From contig OZ320319.1 in the NCBI GenBank assembly GCA_976226885.1, positions 77,810,001 to 77,874,000 on the forward strand: DNA of 64,000 nucleotides, read 5' to 3'. Below are positions 54,490-62,815 of the stretch, one piece after another. A program made the translations under genes and the position numbers. The first letter of the stretch is position 1; the number at the start of each line of letters is the position of its first letter. Under the pieces are notes generated by a model. That model was not told the origin of the DNA. It worked only from the letters and a program-made list of their open reading frames with translations, and ran no database searches. The stretch comes from Iphione sp. A-MEVVRFRX5. Lineage: Eukaryota.

Positions 54490-54702
54490 CTATGCTGTAA
54501 CTCAAAGACCTCAGACACTCCATCCACCCCCCGGCCGCATCCCTCAGTTCATAGTTCTCAACAAGAACTGGATTTTCATCCTATCTTTGGTGTGTAGGAA
54601 ATACAGGTGACTTCATAGTCTCTCGGCTGCTCATTATCTGGTTTGGTTGCTGCACGTTGTAAGTTAATATGTATATGTACATGTGTGATTTTATTCAGAT
54701 AC

Positions 54703-55275
54703 CTTGACCCCCTTCCTGACGAGCTCCCTCTGGCGATAGCTCTCGGTGCTGCTGTCGTAGCGCCCCCTCCAGGCGTAGTCGCACACCTGCGCCAGCAGGG
54801 CGCGCAGTTCGTTCACCATGTCGGCGGGCGTGTTCGACCGCCGCACCGTCTGCGGCCGCCGCACGCCGCTGCGGGCGTACGCGCGCGTGAGGTCGGCGCG
54901 CGTGAAGCAGGCGCGCCGCACGTACAGCCGACAGCCGTGGCGGAGGGCGGCGTCGACGGCGCGGCGCTGGTGCGGGCGCGAGAAGAGCGCCGCCTCCCAG
55001 TGTCGACGACGGACGCCGCGCGTCACGCAGGCGAGCACGGGCGTCTTGACCGTCGAGGTGGGCGCCTGCACGGCGAACTCGTAGACGGCGGGCGGCGTCA
55101 TGTCGGCGTAGAGCTGGTGCTTGCGCGAGCCGAGCCGCTCGCCGTGGCGGTGTTCCCAGGCCTCGCCAGGGGGCGCCGTCTTCACCATAGCCTGCTGCCA
55201 GTGAGACCAGTCGAGGTGGGAGAGCACGAAACGGTCGCCGCTCACGCGCTCACGCAAGACTCGCTCGGGCCTCTT
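54703..55275 (-). CDS. vWA / ET-like gene, exon encoding a GIY-YIG-like (EFFECTOR OF TRANSCRIPTION-type) domain
   Basis: tacag acceptor; very GC-rich coding bias; motifs WSHW, PAVYEFAV, GCRLYVR, ALLAQVCDYAW; in phase with the exon ending at 61874. Confidence 0.8.
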
Positions 55276-55667
55276 CTGTATACAGGAAATAGAGGTGCAT
55301 TAAAGTAATTTATGTATATGTGCGAATGGTTTGGCGTTATGTATATATGTATACCTGCCTTACATGCAAAAATATTTTACAAACTTGTGGAAACTTGTGT
55401 CCTCCCCTGTCCCGCCCCCTCCCCCACCAAAAGCTCGGGATGAAAATGGCGCTTTACCATCCTAAACCACATCTATGCCCCCAGGGTTTTACCAGTTTCA
55501 CCATCATCGTGCATAGGCCGATTTTAATGCATTCAGCATTAGGGTATTTTTGCAGAGGTATATAATGGAAATTTTCATGGATTCATCAAATTTACGGTAA
55601 TTTTCCAACCACCCAAGAAGCATGCAACCACCAGTGGCATAGCCAACTTTTCCTATTAGTGGGCACC

Positions 55668-55924
55668 AAAAATTTTTGTACCAATGTTTATCACTAACAA
55701 TCAAGTTCTGACCTTTGACCTGATCTAATTAACATATCCTTTAAAAACCTCCACATTAGTCTACTTGGGTAACCAAAACTAGCTAAATATAACAAACACA
55801 GTGCTCCTGAAGAAGGTAACCCCATACCGAAACGTTGGGCAATACTGTAACATTCAGAAATAAAAGCCAGACTCATTAAACTGGACACCTGTGGTTGGGT
55901 TTTGTTTGATCATTATCATTTATA
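55668..55924 (+). repeat. Penelope pseudo-LTR, 5' copy (257 bp)
   Basis: I find no difference from 60176-60432 (offset 4508). The ORF track gives identical antisense 64-aa translations for both copies. Confidence 0.95.
55799..55847 (+). ncRNA. Minimal type I hammerhead ribozyme (5' pLTR)
   Basis: Stem I tgctc/gggca (extended by cagt/actg), core CTGAAGA, stem II ggta/tacc, GAAA, palindromic ACGT stem III. Predicted cleavage after GUU at 55836. Confidence 0.85.
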
Positions 55925-56116
55925 GATTTTTTCACTCACACTCAGCATCCATCCATAGGATCCCCAACCCAGGAGTCCGCCATTCCACACACAGGTCCAT
56001 TACTTCCCACTCTCAAAACTAGCCGCACGGCATAATTCGGAAGCAGTATCTCGATCAGATCTGGACCTAACGAAGGTACCTCCACCACACGGAATAACTC
56101 GAACACAACTACACCT

Positions 56117-56683
56117 ATGGCAGACTCGGATCAACAATCACAAAGAAACACTGACAACCAAACAACTGACCAGCAACCTGAGTCAGTAAGAATACCTGAT
56201 ACAGCTGTTCCGTATTTCCGCATGTGCCGGAAACTGGCACTGAACATTATCAAAGCAAAACACCACCATGACTACTTAAGAAGATGCATTGATAACCAGG
56301 TATCACCAAAGGGACTACAAATTCGTGTCCCAGCACAAATACCAGAACCAACACCCGACTTTATCATCACCTGGGAAAAAGCACATTTGGCTTTCAGTAG
56401 AGAGCTAACACAAATCCTTGCCGGATACTACTCACAGAGGGTCAACACCCTCAACACACAACTTGAACAATCCAAAGCGGAGCTGCAAAAGTTATGCAAC
56501 ACTCGACAACGGGAACACATCAATAGCATAATATGCAGACTAGAGACCACACAACAAACGTCTCTTCTAGAACGAAGAACAAGAAAAACCGGAGGTTTAT
56601 CCGGTACAACACCACAGACAAACGCAGCACCATCTTCAACCTCTCATCCTACACCCTCAACGAGTCAGAATGCTCAGTCCTAG
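56117..56683 (+). CDS. Penelope ORF1 N-terminal segment (separated from the RT frame by one frameshift)
   Basis: HHHDYLRRCIDNQVSPKGLQ matches the H..(F/Y)L..C....V.PKGL N-terminal motif of Penelope ORFs. One extra A in the A5 run at 56584-56588 would fuse it to the RT frame. Confidence 0.75.
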   Translation: MADSDQQSQRNTDNQTTDQQPESVRIPDTAVPYFRMCRKLALNIIKAKHHHDYLRRCIDNQVSPKGLQIRVPAQIPEPTPDFIITWEKAHLAFSRELTQILAGYYSQRVNTLNTQLEQSKAELQKLCNTRQREHINSIICRLETTQQTSLLERRTRKTGGLSGTTPQTNAAPSSTSHPTPSTSQNAQS

Positions 56684-58794
56684 AATTAGGCCTGAGCTTC
56701 GTCCCAACACCCCCAAAACCCAATAAGATCCACACCATAAGAGACACTCTACTATTCACCAGACGCATAAAACTGAAGCACTACTTCCAGGACATGGAAT
56801 CATCCCAAACCACACCCCTTTTTCCACAAGAGAAAACGGGATGGACACCCCCACCAAACCTTTGTGAATACATTGACACCAGCACCAACTACATTACAAG
56901 ACAAATGATGAAACCACTACCACATGCACGCCGCAAAGACAATCTCAACAATGAACAACGGCTAGCAATTCAAAGCTTAAGAAACAACACTGAGATAGTT
57001 ATCAAACCAGCTGACAAGGGAGGAGGCATAGTGATCCTGGATAGGATACACTATGAAACCGAGGCCCAACGACAACTGTCTAACACCAACCACTACACCC
57101 GCACCCCTAACGACACCACCCACCAGAGAGCCCAACAAATCACCCAAAGATTGTTAGAAATGGAACAATCCCGAGAAATCCCATTTGGAGCTCACAAAAA
57201 TCTATTACCAGCCAACATTCGCACATCCCCATTCTACCTACTACCGAAAATACACAAACCTAACAACCCAGGAAGACCGATCGTATCAGGAATCAACAGC
57301 CCCACCGACATCCTATCAAGAACTGTCGACATGGTACTAAAGCCCTTAGTGCCATTGTCATCCAGTTACATCAAAGACACTAAGCATTTCATTAACATCA
57401 TCCAAGCAACCAAGAGACTCGGCGACCGACAACACTTGGTCACCATAGACGTGTCGGCTCTATACACTTCAATCCCTCATGAGGAAGGCATTGAGGCTGT
57501 CCGATCAGCACTAACCGCCAAACCCTCCCCACACATACTACCAACCACAGCAGCCCACATTGTAGAAATGATCCTAAAGAACAACACATTCCATTTCAAT
57601 GGACAACACTACCATCAAGTCCATGGCACAGCAATGGGAACTAAGATGGCACCAAACTACGCTAACATATTCATGACACAATTGGAAGAAAAACTCATCA
57701 ACACCATGAATATCAAACCCATACTATGGAAACAGTACATCGATGATGTATTTGCCATCTTCGAAGGCACCCCTGATGAAATCGTGGAAGAACTCAACAA
57801 GTTGAATGACTTCCATCCCACAATCAAATTCACACATGAAATCAACGACAGCTCCATTAACTTCCTAGACACCACAGTATTCGTGGACGACAACAGACAG
57901 CTAATGACAAAACTATACAGAAAACCAACTGACACTTTCTCCTATCTCCACTACTCTTCTCACCATCCAACACACCTGAAAGATGCCATAGCCTACAGCC
58001 AGGCAGTCCGCATCAGAACAATATGCAGCAGACTATCGGACTTTGACATAGCATGCAAAACGCTACTCAAGCAATTAACCCTAAGGGGACACATCCACAA
58101 CAAGGTAAAGTCCGCAATTCAGAAAGCAAGAAATCTGAACAGAGAGGACCTCCTGCAACAACACAAGAAACAAGAGAAAAAAATGATCCCATTTGTACTA
58201 GAGTTCAACCCGTACCACCACAGAACACACCACATAATCAATGAAGCACTATCCCTCATCCCCAACCTGCCGAACAATAGGAAATTCCGTGACCACAAAT
58301 GGATGGTAACACATCGCAGAACTAGCAATCTTCGTGACATCCTGACGTCGTCACCTCACCCACGCAACCCTGCCAAGCCGGGGAGCACACCATGCATGAA
58401 ACACTCATGTAATCAGTGCGAACAAGTCAATCGCACAAACACTGTGACCTCCCACACCACTGGAGAAACCCACCAAATAAAGCACACCCTAAACTGTCAA
58501 ACAAGGGGCATCATATATGTCCTCACCTGTCCCGCTTGTGGTCAACAGTACGTGGGCCAAACGGGCAGGAAAGCCGGACAACGAATAGCGGACCACAAAC
58601 GGGACCTTCGTCGAAGGGACCGCAACTCACCTGTAACGAAACACATGTTGGACCATGACGTAACAGCAGAAGAACTGCAATTCTCCATCGTTGAGAAATC
58701 ACCGGATGATAAAAATATCCGGCTAAGACTGGAAGAGGCTTGGATCCGAGTAATCGACAGCACATCTCCGAGCGGCATCAACCAACAACTGTAA
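56533..58794 (+). CDS. Penelope reverse transcriptase + GIY-YIG endonuclease
   Basis: IFNLS, LGLSFVP, IKPADKGGGIV, YLLPKIHK, GRPIVS, TIDVSALYTSIP, GTAMGTKMAPNYANIFM, YIDD; CxxxxCxxC then IIYVLTC...YVGQTGR...RIADH...EEAWI...PSGIN. Confidence 0.95.
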   Translation: MQTRDHTTNVSSRTKNKKNRRFIRYNTTDKRSTIFNLSSYTLNESECSVLELGLSFVPTPPKPNKIHTIRDTLLFTRRIKLKHYFQDMESSQTTPLFPQEKTGWTPPPNLCEYIDTSTNYITRQMMKPLPHARRKDNLNNEQRLAIQSLRNNTEIVIKPADKGGGIVILDRIHYETEAQRQLSNTNHYTRTPNDTTHQRAQQITQRLLEMEQSREIPFGAHKNLLPANIRTSPFYLLPKIHKPNNPGRPIVSGINSPTDILSRTVDMVLKPLVPLSSSYIKDTKHFINIIQATKRLGDRQHLVTIDVSALYTSIPHEEGIEAVRSALTAKPSPHILPTTAAHIVEMILKNNTFHFNGQHYHQVHGTAMGTKMAPNYANIFMTQLEEKLINTMNIKPILWKQYIDDVFAIFEGTPDEIVEELNKLNDFHPTIKFTHEINDSSINFLDTTVFVDDNRQLMTKLYRKPTDTFSYLHYSSHHPTHLKDAIAYSQAVRIRTICSRLSDFDIACKTLLKQLTLRGHIHNKVKSAIQKARNLNREDLLQQHKKQEKKMIPFVLEFNPYHHRTHHIINEALSLIPNLPNNRKFRDHKWMVTHRRTSNLRDILTSSPHPRNPAKPGSTPCMKHSCNQCEQVNRTNTVTSHTTGETHQIKHTLNCQTRGIIYVLTCPACGQQYVGQTGRKAGQRIADHKRDLRRRDRNSPVTKHMLDHDVTAEELQFSIVEKSPDDKNIRLRLEEAWIRVIDSTSPSGINQQL

Positions 58795-58863
58795 GCGGGA
58801 CGTCGCCCGCCACGTCACCGTGACGTAACAATAGCCCCGTCACCATGACAACATCGCATCGCT

Positions 58864-59370
58864 ATGACAATGACGCAACAGCAAAAAACCTCCACATACG
58901 AGTACTTCAGTAACCGTTTTATCAGCTCTGAACTAATCTCCAGCATGGAGAAACTACAGAAATGCTCCATTTGTGGCGAATGGATGAAGAAAGGAGACAA
59001 GACCCTCCTAGACCACCTCAATCAGAAGCATAATCAACCAGGGAATAAAATCTCTGGTAAGTTGCCATGCTATTTCTGTATGAACTATTACAGCCGCTCA
59101 GACAGCCTCCAGCGGCATATACGAACGATGCATAATATTGATACCAAATTACCCCGACCAAAGTACACCCCTGTAAAAATGAACACTAAACCCAAAACTG
59201 TGAAACAAAATCATCGAGTGTGCCAGTCCCCATCCAAATACACTATACGCCTAGTATACAATACTCCGCTTGTCTGCAGAACGGACCCCTCCCAGTGGCG
59301 ACAAGTCTGGAACAACCACAACAACGGCACCAAGTATGACGAACAAGGCAGTGCACTCCACAATCACTAA
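58864..59370 (+). CDS. Accessory ORF inside the Penelope element: two C2H2 zinc fingers, 168 aa
   Basis: CSICGEWMKKGDKTLLDHLNQKH and CYFCMNYYSRSDSLQRHIRTMH fit C-x2-C-x12/13-H-x4-H. Confidence 0.7.
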   Translation: MTMTQQQKTSTYEYFSNRFISSELISSMEKLQKCSICGEWMKKGDKTLLDHLNQKHNQPGNKISGKLPCYFCMNYYSRSDSLQRHIRTMHNIDTKLPRPKYTPVKMNTKPKTVKQNHRVCQSPSKYTIRLVYNTPLVCRTDPSQWRQVWNNHNNGTKYDEQGSALHNH

Positions 59371-60127
59371 CACAAACAACAACAGCAACACCACTGCAGC
59401 CACCACGACGGTGAAACGTACTATTGAGATCGATCCTCCAGAACTGGATCCTACCGTCCGCAAGAGGCCCCGCCATGTACACCCCCTCGCACGCCTCACA
59501 TTACACAAGAGCAAGTCACGGATAGCATCAAGACTGATCAAGACTAAGGCCGTATGCAGCTCCAGCAGCAATACCAGTGTATCTTCAACCAGCTCCGTGG
59601 GTAGCAATCCACCACGAAAACCAGCTGAGGAGGTCAAGAAACCAATCGACTACACCACTCTACTGAAACGTGATTTAGAAGTATCGAGCGACGACGATGA
59701 ACCACCAGCACCAAGCAAGAAATCCAAACCAGTACCAAGCAAGCCTGCAACCAGCACCCACAACAAGACCCCGAGAAGCGTAGAGAAGCCACCATCCGAT
59801 ACCAAAGAATGAAACAACAAGATTCCCATGGACTGCAAACCGAAGCGGGAGAAGAACCCCCTGCTCCCCACTCCACGAGATGAGGAATATGTCCCCCACC
59901 CTGTAAAGCCAAGGACCACCAACAAGAACAGTGCAGACAACCATAGAGGCCTTTATGAACCAGTCCTAAGGGCCATTCCCACAGACGAATGGATTTATGA
60001 CATGTATCTCTTAGTAAAGAAGGCAGACACTTATATTGGTAACGCCATGGGTCGCGCCATGGTTATCCGCGGATTAGTACCAGAGAAACATAGATATGAA
60101 TTAAATAAGCAGTTCCTTAGACAATAG
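59255..60127 (+). CDS. Accessory reading frame inside the Penelope element: Ser/Thr/Lys/Pro-rich region plus about 100-aa C-terminal domain, interrupted by one in-frame TGA (59810-59812)
   Basis: ORF-track entries 59270-59812 and 59828-60127 are in the same frame, separated only by TGA and five sense codons (aac aac aag att ccc). Confidence 0.55.
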
Positions 60128-60175
60128 ACATCTGACCCAATTTTTGTACCACATAGTATCATATTGTATATGTAA

Positions 60176-60432
60176 AAAAATTTTTGTACCAATGTTTATC
60201 ACTAACAATCAAGTTCTGACCTTTGACCTGATCTAATTAACATATCCTTTAAAAACCTCCACATTAGTCTACTTGGGTAACCAAAACTAGCTAAATATAA
60301 CAAACACAGTGCTCCTGAAGAAGGTAACCCCATACCGAAACGTTGGGCAATACTGTAACATTCAGAAATAAAAGCCAGACTCATTAAACTGGACACCTGT
60401 GGTTGGGTTTTGTTTGATCATTATCATTTATA
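60176..60432 (+). repeat. Penelope pseudo-LTR, 3' copy (257 bp)
   Basis: Apparently identical to 55668-55924. Confidence 0.95.
60307..60355 (+). ncRNA. Minimal type I hammerhead ribozyme (3' pLTR)
   Basis: Same sequence as 55799-55847; predicted cleavage after 60344. Confidence 0.85.
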
Positions 60433-61033
60433 CATTTATGATTACTTGACATGAGATTTATTTGAAAGAGAGATATAAGAACTGCTATAGCCGCTCCAGG
60501 ACCATTTCAAGACTACATGGCAAAGGTCTCAGTCCCAAAAGCTAAATGTGATTCAAGTTAAACAGCCCTACGACATACTGCTGTATGATAACGTATACAC
60601 ATGTACTTCAAATTTTTAAAGATTTGTCCAATATTTCATCACATGATGACAAAACATCAAAATGTAGTTTCAGCGTGTTGGGAATTCCGCGTATACGGTA
60701 AGGATTTGTGGGTGATAACAACATGTACATCTTGTTAGCAAATATTACACATTCAAGTAACAGCATTAGGCCAAAGAAAATACATGTAGGTGTGTTTCTG
60801 GTAAAGACCAGCCAAAAACCTAGGTAGGGGGTGGGGTATCTTTCTGATTTTTTCCCCACTTTCTTCCTCTGGTTTTCAATAATAATAAAGACAATATGAA
60901 GAATTTTGACCAATTTGAATGAGTTTTACAGTTTTTTGCTGAATTTCCATGGACTAGTTGTTTTTCCACCAAGTTTACAAAACAAGCATTCGATGCAGCT
61001 AGTGCTGCAAATGGAGGTCATATGTGCTGCCGA

Positions 61034-61373
61034 CATCGTGACTGGTCCTTCCCGCTCCTCTGACAGCCCCCCCCCCACACACACACACAGCCGGCCCACT
61101 CACTAGCAGTACCTCCCCAACCTCTAAGGACCCCCCCAGCCAGCACAGAAATGTTGTAAAAACGTTGTAAAAAATGTTCTCAAAACGTTTTTAAAACGTT
61201 GTGTGTTGGCTGGGGGGGTCCTTAGAGGTTGGGGAGGTACTGCTAGTGAGTGGGCCAGAGCACAGAAACGTTGTAAAAACGTTGTGAAAACGTTGTACTG
61301 CTAGTGAGTGGGCCGGCTGTGTGTGTGTGTGGGGGGGGGGCTGTCAGAGGAGCGGGAAGGACCAGTCACGATG
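61034..61373. repeat. Nested inverted repeats around a small cccagc...gctggg MITE-like core
   Basis: Outer arms 61034-61112 / 61295-61373 (79 bp) and inner arms 61093-61146 / 61203-61256 (54 bp, 1 mismatch); aaaacgtt units in the loops. Confidence 0.9.
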
Positions 61374-61476: not shown

Positions 61477-61873
61477 ACTAGGGCTGATGTCAGCTTTCAA
61501 CCCAATGCAAACTCCTTCCCTCACCAGTTCTACCATTGGAGCTCCCATAGAGATATCTCCACATCTCGTGGGAAGACTTTATCTCCTCAGTGATATAAGG
61601 GGGTGCAAGCTGGCTCAGACTTCAAAGAATAGGCCCCTCCCCCCATGACTCATTTTACTCGCCTCTATAATGGAGGTCAGCAATCCGCAACGATACTCCT
61701 ACGTATCGCAGATATGACCTCCATTGAATATATGCTGTGAAAACACATATCTAAGGAAATTTGGCCTTGGAAACTCTTGGGGCCCAAAACATTTTTAGGT
61801 AGAGTGAGGTTTTACTAGGTAGGGGTGGGTGACCAGAAAGACACCTTTTCTTTGGGGGGGGGGGGCCTTTTAC

Positions 61874-62009
61874 CTGTCTCCTTCTGCGCTTGGGACTGCC
61901 TTCTTGTTTCTCAACAGCTTCCCGTTTCTTGCCGCTGCTGGAGCTCTGTGGTCGTCGAGCCGCCCCGGTAGTCGCCGCTGTCGCCGTCGCCGTCGACGTC
62001 GTCGTCGCT

Positions 62010-62040
<31 letters not shown>

Positions 62041-62356
62041 ACGATTCGTCCGCCTTGGCACTCTTCTTAACCTTCCGCCCGGTCGGACCTGCTTTCTTCG
62101 CCTTCGTCGTTGTCCTTCCTGTAGCCGCGCCAGACGCGCCCCCCTGGGCGGTGCCACTAGCTGCGCCATCATCGTCGCCGTCGTCGGCATCGTCGACTAC
62201 TTCCGGTGCGTCGTTGTCACTAGTGGAAGCCGCCGCCGCTCCATCGGCCGATCCAGAAGGGCCCGCTTCGTTTTGGTCTTTGAGGGTGGAGAAGATTCGC
62301 ACGAGGTCAGGCTTCATTGCTCCTCGTTCCCGCTGGCGAACTTCCTCTTCAAAGGC
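61874..62356 (-). CDS. vWA / ET-like gene, linker exon (161 codons; Ala/Thr/Lys-rich low complexity, Thr-Ala hexamer repeat)
   Basis: ttgcag|AFEEEVRQRERGAM...PKRRRRQ|gtaaaa; phase 0/0. Confidence 0.85.
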
Positions 62357-62418
62357 CTGCAAGGTGGCGTGGGTTATAAAGGACCCTCTTAATAAACTGA
62401 GACTCACTGGAATTATTC

Positions 62419-62442
62419 ACACACACACACACACACGCACAT

Positions 62443-62478
<36 letters not shown>
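62419..62478. repeat. (CA)n microsatellite
   Basis: Direct reading. Confidence 0.95.
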
Positions 62479-62483
<5 letters not shown>

Positions 62484-62815
62484 TATCAGTATATCTAACG
62501 ATATCGCCAAACTGGTGCCCCTCGGCACATTCGCGTTTGAGACAGGTATAGAAAGGGAAAATATCTATGTTTGAATGATACACATGTTCATTTGATTGTC
62601 AACAATTCAATGATGATTGACGTAATGCAAAGTGGATTCTCGTTATATGAATGCAGGTAAGTTAACAACATTCAGCCAAGAAATTTCATGACGACTACAT
62701 ACTATTCCTGTTTATCAGAATTTACTACGTGAGGAGCAGGACTAACTAAGAAACGTCAGGACTAACAATGAAATACAGGTGTTGTTGCAAAGTAAAGTCA
62801 TGGCGTATGCTTTAC

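Follow-up and report, generated by a model that had tools for sequence, protein, structure and literature searches.

A conserved zinc-finger accessory gene with a candidate intron in a clade of endonuclease-bearing Penelope-like elements

Introduction

Whether an endonuclease-bearing Penelope-like element (PLE) can carry a gene of its own beyond its reverse transcriptase (RT) is the question raised by a locus in Iphione sp. A-MEVVRFRX5 (assembly GCA_976226885.1). The element occupies positions 55668-60437, plus strand, about 4.77 kb, of a 64,000-nucleotide (nt) stretch of contig OZ320319.1 (77,810,001-77,874,000; hereafter the window), in the interior of a chromosome-scale contig at 77.8 Mb. 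All features below are on the plus strand unless stated otherwise. About 1.2 kb of same-strand coding sequence follow the stop codon of its RT-endonuclease open reading frame (ORF), and it is to be asked whether they belong to the element, how they may be expressed and what they may do.

PLEs are usually treated as minimal retroelements with one polyprotein, and a conserved, selected accessory gene would change their annotation. Those with an endonuclease have been described as having a single ORF, optionally with a frameshifted ORF1 (Craig et al. 2021, PMC8557442; Arkhipova and Yushenova 2019). In these works extra ORFs are described only for the giant, mostly endonuclease-less Terminons. The original prediction, made from the letters of the window alone, knew of no PLE lineage with such a cassette, and this stands for the searchable literature, in which we found neither a downstream zinc-finger gene nor a second ORF in endonuclease-bearing PLEs, Repbase and Dfam lying outside the comparison.

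An accessory gene kept by purifying selection

The element is bounded by the direct terminal repeats, or pseudo-long terminal repeats (pLTRs), that mark PLEs: a 5' pLTR at 55668-55929 and a 3' pLTR at 60176-60437, each of 262 nt and 100% identical to one another. Between them lie, all on the plus strand, ORF1, ORF2 (RT plus GIY-YIG endonuclease) and the accessory cassette, which spans 1333 nt when aligned. An extra same-strand zinc-finger cassette inside the pLTRs of a Penelope-like element is what had been predicted, and the repeats, the Pfam matches to RT and GIY-YIG and the ORFs agree with it. The published plan of a single ORF, or of ORF1 plus ORF, is thereby exceeded by two further conserved reading frames after the endonuclease.

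Three same-strand ORFs lie 3' of ORF2, at 58864-59370 (frame 1), 59270-59812 (frame 2) and 59828-60127 (frame 2). The last two are continuous in related copies, where a single frame stays open over 277-315 amino acids (aa), and by sequence comparison the three pieces are one gene in two frames. ORF3 (58945-59370) encodes 141 aa with two C2H2 fingers and would be the product of an unspliced message. The ORF4 frame, or exon 2 (59280-60127), encodes a Ser/Thr/Lys/Pro-rich low-complexity region and then a C-terminal domain, and contains a TGA at 59810-59812. The conserved start of ORF3 is the ATG at 58945; no ATG is conserved for ORF4 among the aligned related copies of the window element's clade. 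The original prediction had taken 58864-60127 as coding, and its coding nature holds. Its start does not, because the conserved ATG is at 58945 and 58795-58944 is a non-coding spacer.

Constraint was assessed in an alignment of 15 copies, namely the window copy and 14 related ones with the same order and frame relations and RT identity down to 55%. Variability at third codon positions peaks in the ORF3 frame over about 58915-59280 and in the ORF4 frame over about 59290-60127, across the TGA, and the codon periodicity changes from one frame to the other near 59280-59290. Pairwise ratios of nonsynonymous to synonymous substitution (dN/dS) are 0.17-0.34 for ORF3 and 0.14-0.32 for ORF4, and 0.22-0.25 for the least saturated pair. 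This periodicity, together with the low dN/dS, means that both frames are protein-coding and constrained. The accessory gene is part of the element and is maintained by purifying selection. The check proposed at the outset, whether the cassette is family-wide and under purifying selection, was therefore answered positively by 15 copies with dN/dS of 0.14-0.34. The A/C strand bias, said to be common to the RT frame and the cassette, runs unbroken from about 55800 to 60000 (GC skew -0.1 to -0.4, AT skew +0.2 to +0.49), and the long residence proposed in place of a recent capture is upheld by the same order in related copies and by divergence in step with that of the RT.

A candidate intron and two predicted products

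How the two frames may be joined is suggested by signals in the nucleotide sequence. All 15 copies agree in the hexamer GTAAGT (59057-59062), the sole invariant run of at least 5 nt in the 1333-nt cassette, and two of the three invariant third codon positions (of 111 third positions) lie within it. About 220 nt past this putative donor, a tract rich in pyrimidines runs into a CAG (59277-59279) and persists despite residue changes: the residues at the acceptor vary (V/L/P, C/S/R, R/S), and the nucleotides always read xxC-AGx. The two sites would delimit a phase-1 intron of 223 nt (59057-59279), within which finger 2 is coded in the ORF3 frame. Its excision would bring the first base of a Gly codon to the AA of the ORF4 frame. 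Homologous sites join in frame in 12 of the 14 copies, with introns of 214-244 nt, as well as in L051-L053, whose homologous sites were also compared. In L054, a relative from another data set, the frames are offset by 2 rather than 1, and the homologous interval, GTACGT...CAG, has a length of 236 nt (2 modulo 3), so that the frames would again be joined; we take this as independent support for the intron. Lineages in which the two frames are fused into one ORF are without such a donor. The locus thus combines GT...AG ends, a consensus donor, a pyrimidine tract, a frame-preserving join and conservation beyond coding needs, as expected of a spliceosomal intron by sequence.

We regard an accessory unit built as a gene with an intron as probable. 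Since the intron stretch is itself under selection as coding sequence for finger 2, two products are likely: without splicing, a two-finger protein, and with it, a protein that runs from finger 1 into the ORF4 region and measures about 319 aa in relatives whose frame is intact. Such a fusion of finger 1 with ORF4 was seen in none of 39 ORF4-family proteins scanned (33 profile matches plus cluster members).

Fingers, low-complexity region and C-terminal bundle

The two C2H2 fingers of the original prediction were confirmed by a Pfam zf-BED match of 28.1 bits (cut-off 20.6) and by their ligands: C10, H24, H29, C42, C45, H58 and H63 are invariant in 13 copies, and C7 nearly so. The C-x2-C-x12/13-H-x4-H spacing, the beta-beta-alpha fold and the residues of the recognition helix are all those of C2H2 fingers, and the structure model of ORF3 contains two beta-beta-alpha fingers with a predicted local distance difference test (pLDDT) score of 85-93. 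In finger 2 the helix S-R-x-D-S-L-x-R-H is nearly invariant, and profile matches in the PDB are to the fingers of Zif268/EGR1, ADR1 and Tramtrack (1e-6 to 2e-5). Across the structure and profile comparisons, ORF3 matches the fingers of Tramtrack, ZBTB7A, CTCF and Zif268; in Foldseek its model has a probability of 0.98 to 2drp, and the top rows are DNA-bound tandem fingers. Finger 2 thus appears to carry a classic DNA-reading helix, and ORF3 is a predicted DNA binder. A word-based protein search with ORF3 gave no candidate.

In ORF4, the block I-E-I-x-P-P-x-x-D-P-T-V-R-K-R-x-R-H-x-H-P-L is conserved and is basic, resembling a nuclear localization signal (NLS); a serine run, an acidic/serine block (D-L-x-V-S-S-D-S-D) and proline motifs are present as well. 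The C-terminal domain had been predicted as a folded unit of roughly 100 aa. The fold is supported and the size is not, as the AlphaFold model of 59813-60124 contains a confident three-helix bundle of about 45 aa (59981-60115), with helices at residues 57-71, 73-86 and 91-101 and block-mean pLDDT of 95-97. The bundle is conserved across 30 sequences, including external ones. Structure searches with the C-terminal model returned generic helical matches throughout (Foldseek against the PDB, best E=4.9; atlas, TM-score at most 0.39; VIA-align, best Z=4.8). An ESM Atlas feature search with the C-terminal piece gave no usable match, a PDB sequence-profile search with ORF4 gave nothing at E≤1, and Pfam had no match to the low-complexity and C-terminal pieces.

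A spacer with a pLTR core motif

ORF2 and ORF3 are separated by a conserved non-coding spacer of 150 nt (58795-58944), a putative internal promoter of the accessory gene. It has no codon periodicity, and its diversity is 0.42-0.50, compared with 0.55-0.62 at the adjacent third codon positions. Kept within it are ACGTCA and TGACGTAAC (58821-58829), a core motif of 24-32 nt (CCATCCACAT...TACTTCAGT, 58884-58915) and a conserved TCAGT at 58907-58911, 34 nt 5' of the ORF3 ATG, which we take to resemble an initiator element. The 5' pLTR carries a copy of the core motif (AAAAACCTCCACAT..CTACTT..GTAACC) at 55743-55774 that is 81% identical to the spacer copy, and this pLTR copy recurs in the 3' pLTR at 60251-60282; the same three-site pattern of 5' pLTR, spacer and 3' pLTR is found in L033, L034, L035, L036, L039 and L042. 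A motif common to spacer and pLTRs suggests an internal promoter, and in Drosophila virilis Penelope the transcript starts within the pLTR (PMC8557442). It is therefore plausible from the shared motif that the spacer is an internal promoter which reuses the pLTR core. A scan of the spacer for bacterial promoters and terminators found nothing, such models not being relevant to a eukaryote.

Distribution in this genome and beyond

The 1.18-Gb assembly was searched, and 20 loci (L031-L050) were compared by tblastn. With the cassette DNA as query, about 30 places match at 65-79% identity; with the C-terminal 99 aa, more than 147 places do, and these often lie at the close of a frame that is open for about 280-320 aa. 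Those of the 20 loci that are full-length have the same order of ORF1, RT-endonuclease, fingers, low-complexity region and C-terminal domain, at RT identities from 78% to 55%, and the cassette diverges in step with the RT. By coordinate matching, an ORF4 match lies about 500 nt downstream on the same strand for about 49 of 64 RT matches at 55% identity or more, a count resting on 78 scored RT matches and 135 scored of 8742 ORF4 candidates. The other 14 RT matches, at 50-53% identity, have no counterpart among these 135, too small a share to indicate absence. The clade is abundant and diverse here, with 5643 first-look RT candidates, and many scored RT copies have intact frames of 760-810 aa at 50-62% identity. 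Two pairs of copies, L040/L041 (C1:0.3 Mb, C10:100.15 Mb) and L033/L034 (C17:87.2 Mb, C18:3.8 Mb), are nearly identical over the whole element, which could reflect recent transposition, segmental duplication or assembly redundancy.

An ORF4 profile run against 1.84 billion representatives retrieved 33 proteins (best E 2e-21), nearly all on short contigs, and found no host gene or separate transposable element matching the cassette. All five profile-matched contigs that were examined are PLE-linked. A split two-frame gene follows the RT-endonuclease in L053 (Logan ERR14368249; RT 49% identical to that of the window) and L054 (Logan ERR14368248; 48%). A fused ORF with two fingers and a low-complexity region occurs in L055 (SRR30503391; 45%), where it runs off the contig end, and in L056 and L061 (both ENA ERZ25767047; 42% and about 40%), where it ends in a helical tail. 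In the bivalves Ruditapes philippinarum (L057; 40%) and Argopecten irradians (L058; 38%), a two-finger ORF comes directly after the RT-endonuclease, and the cassette is absent in one Branchiostoma copy and one Ylistrum copy examined. On a 527-kb contig of ENA ERZ25767047, L052 (6531-8948) has ORF1 and the zinc-finger cassette with no RT-endonuclease between them; it could be a non-autonomous derivative in which the accessory gene has been retained.

In a midpoint-rooted RT tree of the relatives from this work plus bivalve and amphioxus proteins, drawn without named reference PLEs, gene-bearing elements fall on both sides of the root. So does the fused form, and the split form lies within one well-supported clade. 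On our reading the fused form of the gene is the ancestral one and the split form is derived, the root being only a midpoint.

Proposed organization, comparison with known systems and possible function

These observations can be arranged into a scheme in which a PLE lineage would have a standard genome of two gene units between its terminal repeats. In the first unit, ORF1 would be joined to the RT and GIY-YIG frame by a -1 frame change at AGAAAAA. The second would be the accessory gene, with the spacer and its repeated pLTR core motif acting as internal promoter. Its unspliced message would yield the 141-aa protein with two fingers, and removal of the 223-nt GTAAGT...CAG intron would join finger 1 to the NLS-like motif, the serine/acidic stretch and the three-helix C-terminal domain. 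Both products would then work in the nucleus as an accessory system that binds nucleic acid and by which the element is regulated or targeted. That they are such an element-encoded system is the most likely interpretation of their sequences. That it acts on the element's promoters or guides targeting, as opposed to serving as a ribonucleoprotein (RNP) or chaperone component, is proposed tentatively. The original prediction had named a self-encoded regulator, a factor for the RNP or for targeting, and an anti-silencing protein as conceivable roles.

The element resembles canonical endonuclease-bearing PLEs of the Neptune/Nematis type, which share the RT with C-terminal GIY-YIG, the C-x(2-5)-C-x-x-C linker and the CCHH motif, as well as pLTRs, an optional frameshifted ORF1, the keeping of introns, should the candidate intron be one, and, at motif level, a hammerhead-like block in the repeat (PMC8557442). 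What sets it apart from them is that a second gene, conserved and resembling a transcription unit, fills about 1.2 kb between the stop codon of the endonuclease and the 3' repeat. An RT of PLE type accompanied by additional ORFs is also found in the Terminons/Athena elements of bdelloid rotifers, and the types of extra ORF listed in the accessible text of the review include no two-finger gene (PMC6431247). Terminons are described there as giant, telomere-bound and mostly without endonuclease, whereas the window element is 4.8 kb long (4.77 kb between its ends), dispersed and equipped with one compact accessory gene; it has a GIY-YIG domain and lies inside a chromosome-scale contig. Bdelloid retrotransposons with long terminal repeats that have captured ORFs likewise retain extra ORFs beyond gag and pol, but belong to a different element class with different ORFs, according to the available portion of PMC5408684.

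The layout has a further parallel, on paper, in the tas/bet region of foamy viruses, without any relation in sequence or fold. There an accessory gene is transcribed from an internal promoter that lies 3' of the polymerase gene, and a DNA-binding product and a second product share their N-terminus through splicing into another frame. Foamy viruses are retroviruses with an envelope gene, whereas the window element is a non-viral retrotransposon whose corresponding steps are predicted from its sequence. A bolder version of the scheme, which we put forward as speculation and hold to be unlikely in its entirety, is that a marine-invertebrate PLE clade has a "complex" genome with a pLTR-derived internal promoter and an alternatively spliced accessory gene. 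The short product would be a two-finger DNA binder and the long one would have one finger, the NLS-like motif, the serine/acidic region and the helical domain; together they would form a self-encoded switch over the element's own promoters or target choice, like the accessory genes of complex retroviruses.

Several consequences would follow. At present, annotation probably masks second ORFs of PLEs or mistakes them for zinc-finger genes of the host. The accessory gene appears to bring a regulatory region of its own and to yield two products by way of an intron, and it ranges from this genome to clams and scallops. If this is true, it would be a new case of retroelements evolving regulatory complexity, and would give a concrete function to intron retention, an ability long noted in PLEs. 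For experiments, the conserved DNA-reading finger offers a direct handle, through the question of what it binds.

Alternative explanations

Two other ways of expressing the split gene have to be weighed against splicing. Programmed +1 ribosomal frameshifting could join ORF3 and ORF4 in their overlap to give a collinear protein such as that of L055, L056 or L061, GTAAGT being conserved for some other reason. The +1 relation from ORF3 to ORF4 is indeed kept in 13 of the 14 copies aligned from this genome, and in more distant lineages both fingers belong to a single collinear protein. There is, however, neither a conserved shift-prone site nor a fixed stop, as the ORF3 stop moves by more than 100 nt between copies. 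The offset of 2 in L054 is unbridgeable by a +1 shift and is bridged by the homologous intron, and a shift of this kind gives no reason why GTAAGT and CAG should be conserved at synonymous sites. Frameshifting is thus highly improbable, and on the missing shift site, the L054 offset and the donor and acceptor conservation we reject it as the main joining mechanism. Translation of ORF4 from its own start, by an internal AUG, a non-AUG codon, leaky scanning or reinitiation after ORF3, would give two independent proteins with no splicing. Several external homologues have a semi-conserved Met about 30 aa before the IEI-PP-DPT-RKR motif, and a Met stands at that column in the window copy, L042 and L047 as well; it is absent from L033, L043, L044, L046, L048, L049 and L050, the ORF4-frame periodicity starts right at the acceptor, upstream of the Met column, and the donor and acceptor signals find no explanation. 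We consider this improbable as well, if somewhat less so. The scheme proposed above has difficulties of its own. Because the intron stretch is selected at the protein level, splicing, if any, must be partial. Some external ORF4 homologues start with the semi-conserved Met (M-[VI]-[TR]-P-x-[DE]-R), and ORF4 might be independently translated in some lineages. The premature TGA means that the long product of the window copy would be without its C-terminal domain, and since that domain has no informative relative in fold or sequence, the function proposed above is a guess.

As to the origin and the role of the cassette, the 1.3 kb could be a transduced host fragment or a nested insertion in a single copy. 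Transduction of host DNA into the stretch between the terminal repeats is known for PLEs (review PMC6431247), and the exact subfamily is single-copy in the assembly, its next match having 75% nucleotide identity. Every full-length related copy examined nevertheless has the same cassette, order and frames, as do copies in other organisms; the cassette diverges with the RT, the strand composition is continuous, and no repeats that would flank a nested insertion came to light. Nor are the copies segmental duplicates of one locus, which identities of 55-78% exclude. The chance of a one-off event is therefore negligible, and we reject it, the cassette being integral in related copies of this genome and in other taxa. 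A different role for the products, in which they would be structural parts of the RNP or chaperones that retrotransposition requires in cis, as with the ORF1 proteins of elements without long terminal repeats, has more in its favour: zinc fingers and basic low-complexity regions are common in the nucleic-acid chaperones of retroelements, and the RT-less L052 retains ORF1 together with the cassette. Yet the element already has an ORF1, the finger 2 helix is of the R-S-D-x-L-x-R type typical of sequence-specific DNA readers, and a promoter-like spacer with two isoforms better fits a regulatory layout. The apparently recent window copy, moreover, was inserted with, or soon gained, a truncated long frame. 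We regard such a structural role as rather unlikely.

ORF1, RT-endonuclease and their junction

ORF1 (56117-56683) encodes an N-terminal protein of 188 aa with 52-75% identity in related copies. ORF2 (56533-58794) encodes 753 aa, with Pfam RVT_1 at residues 241-427 (5.1e-12) and GIY-YIG at residues 659-739 (9.6e-7), and 2746 relatives at E≤1e-30 have RVT_1, DUF8422, HTH_animal and GIY-YIG. Its CCHH motif has two Cys between GIY and YIG, in the translation IIYVLTCPACGQQYVGQT, with the His residues after them, and the linker C-MKHS-C-NQ-C (C-x4-C-x2-C) lies upstream of GIY-YIG. A C-x(2-5)-C-x-x-C linker and the CCHH motif mark the endonucleases of Neptune/Nematis-type PLEs, the linker being absent from Penelope/Poseidon (Craig et al., PMC8557442).

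ORF1 and ORF2 overlap by about 150 nt (56533-56683), in a -1 relation kept in the loci checked. The sequence AGAAAAA (56582-56588) in this overlap is invariant in 15 copies, and the coding-frame signal passes there from ORF1, whose third-position variability can be followed to about 56575, to ORF2. It is not a textbook X-XXY-YYZ heptamer. AGAAAAA is a probable -1 frameshift site joining the two, and such a shift is likelier than separate initiation because the ORF2 ATG (56533) is missing in the divergent L048, L049 and L050.

Copy status, terminal repeats and flanking sequence

The assembly contains no other member of the subfamily to which the window copy belongs, and ORF1, ORF2 and ORF3 of this copy are open. 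Its identical pLTRs indicate a recent insertion, as had been predicted, yet the long frame already has a premature stop. This TGA (59810-59812) interrupts ORF4 within a linker of variable sequence, at a point where the frame of every relative continues, and is read as a nonsense change, since Rfam finds no selenocysteine insertion sequence (SECIS) element. Selenocysteine at this codon was considered and rejected for want of a SECIS in the Rfam scan, and because the site is a variable linker at which other copies are open.

The pLTRs contain a hammerhead-ribozyme-like motif, read off the sequence, at 55799-55847 and again at 60307-60355. It is made up of a helix I strand, CUGAAGA, a short helix II, GAAAC, GUU and the second helix I strand, and the block with CUGA(A/U)GA, GAAAC, GUU and complementary helix I strands is kept in 11 of 11 related copies. 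The form is compact, with an extra A before helix II and a helix III that is minimal or near zero. Rfam gave no hammerhead match over 55000-61000 at E≤1, so the call is at motif level alone, and its sole match there was a chance RT-9 outside the element. An AATAAA is conserved in the 5' pLTR (55859-55864), where a GU-rich block is also kept, and recurs in the 3' pLTR (60367-60372) with a conserved TTGGGTTTTG block downstream; the hexamer and these blocks plausibly form a polyadenylation site usable by both gene units. The pLTRs also have a block kept in related copies, TGACCTTTGACCT (55709-55721 and 60217-60229), about 35 nt upstream of the core motif. It is a direct repeat of TGACC(T) half-sites, and its opposite strand resembles a DR1-type nuclear-receptor element.

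Just 3' of the element lies a perfect 79-nt inverted repeat, with arms at 61034-61112 and 61295-61373 that are 182 nt apart, and a nested 69-nt inverted repeat at 90% is found within 61034-61373. GC-rich islands of up to 75% GC, with long ORFs on both strands, are present on both sides of the element (54600-55310 and 61750-62500). The downstream side has a triplet-like CGY(CGY)n repeat (61949-62204), a (CA)n run (62410-62490) and a low-complexity minus-strand ORF (61751-62407) that may be a host exon.

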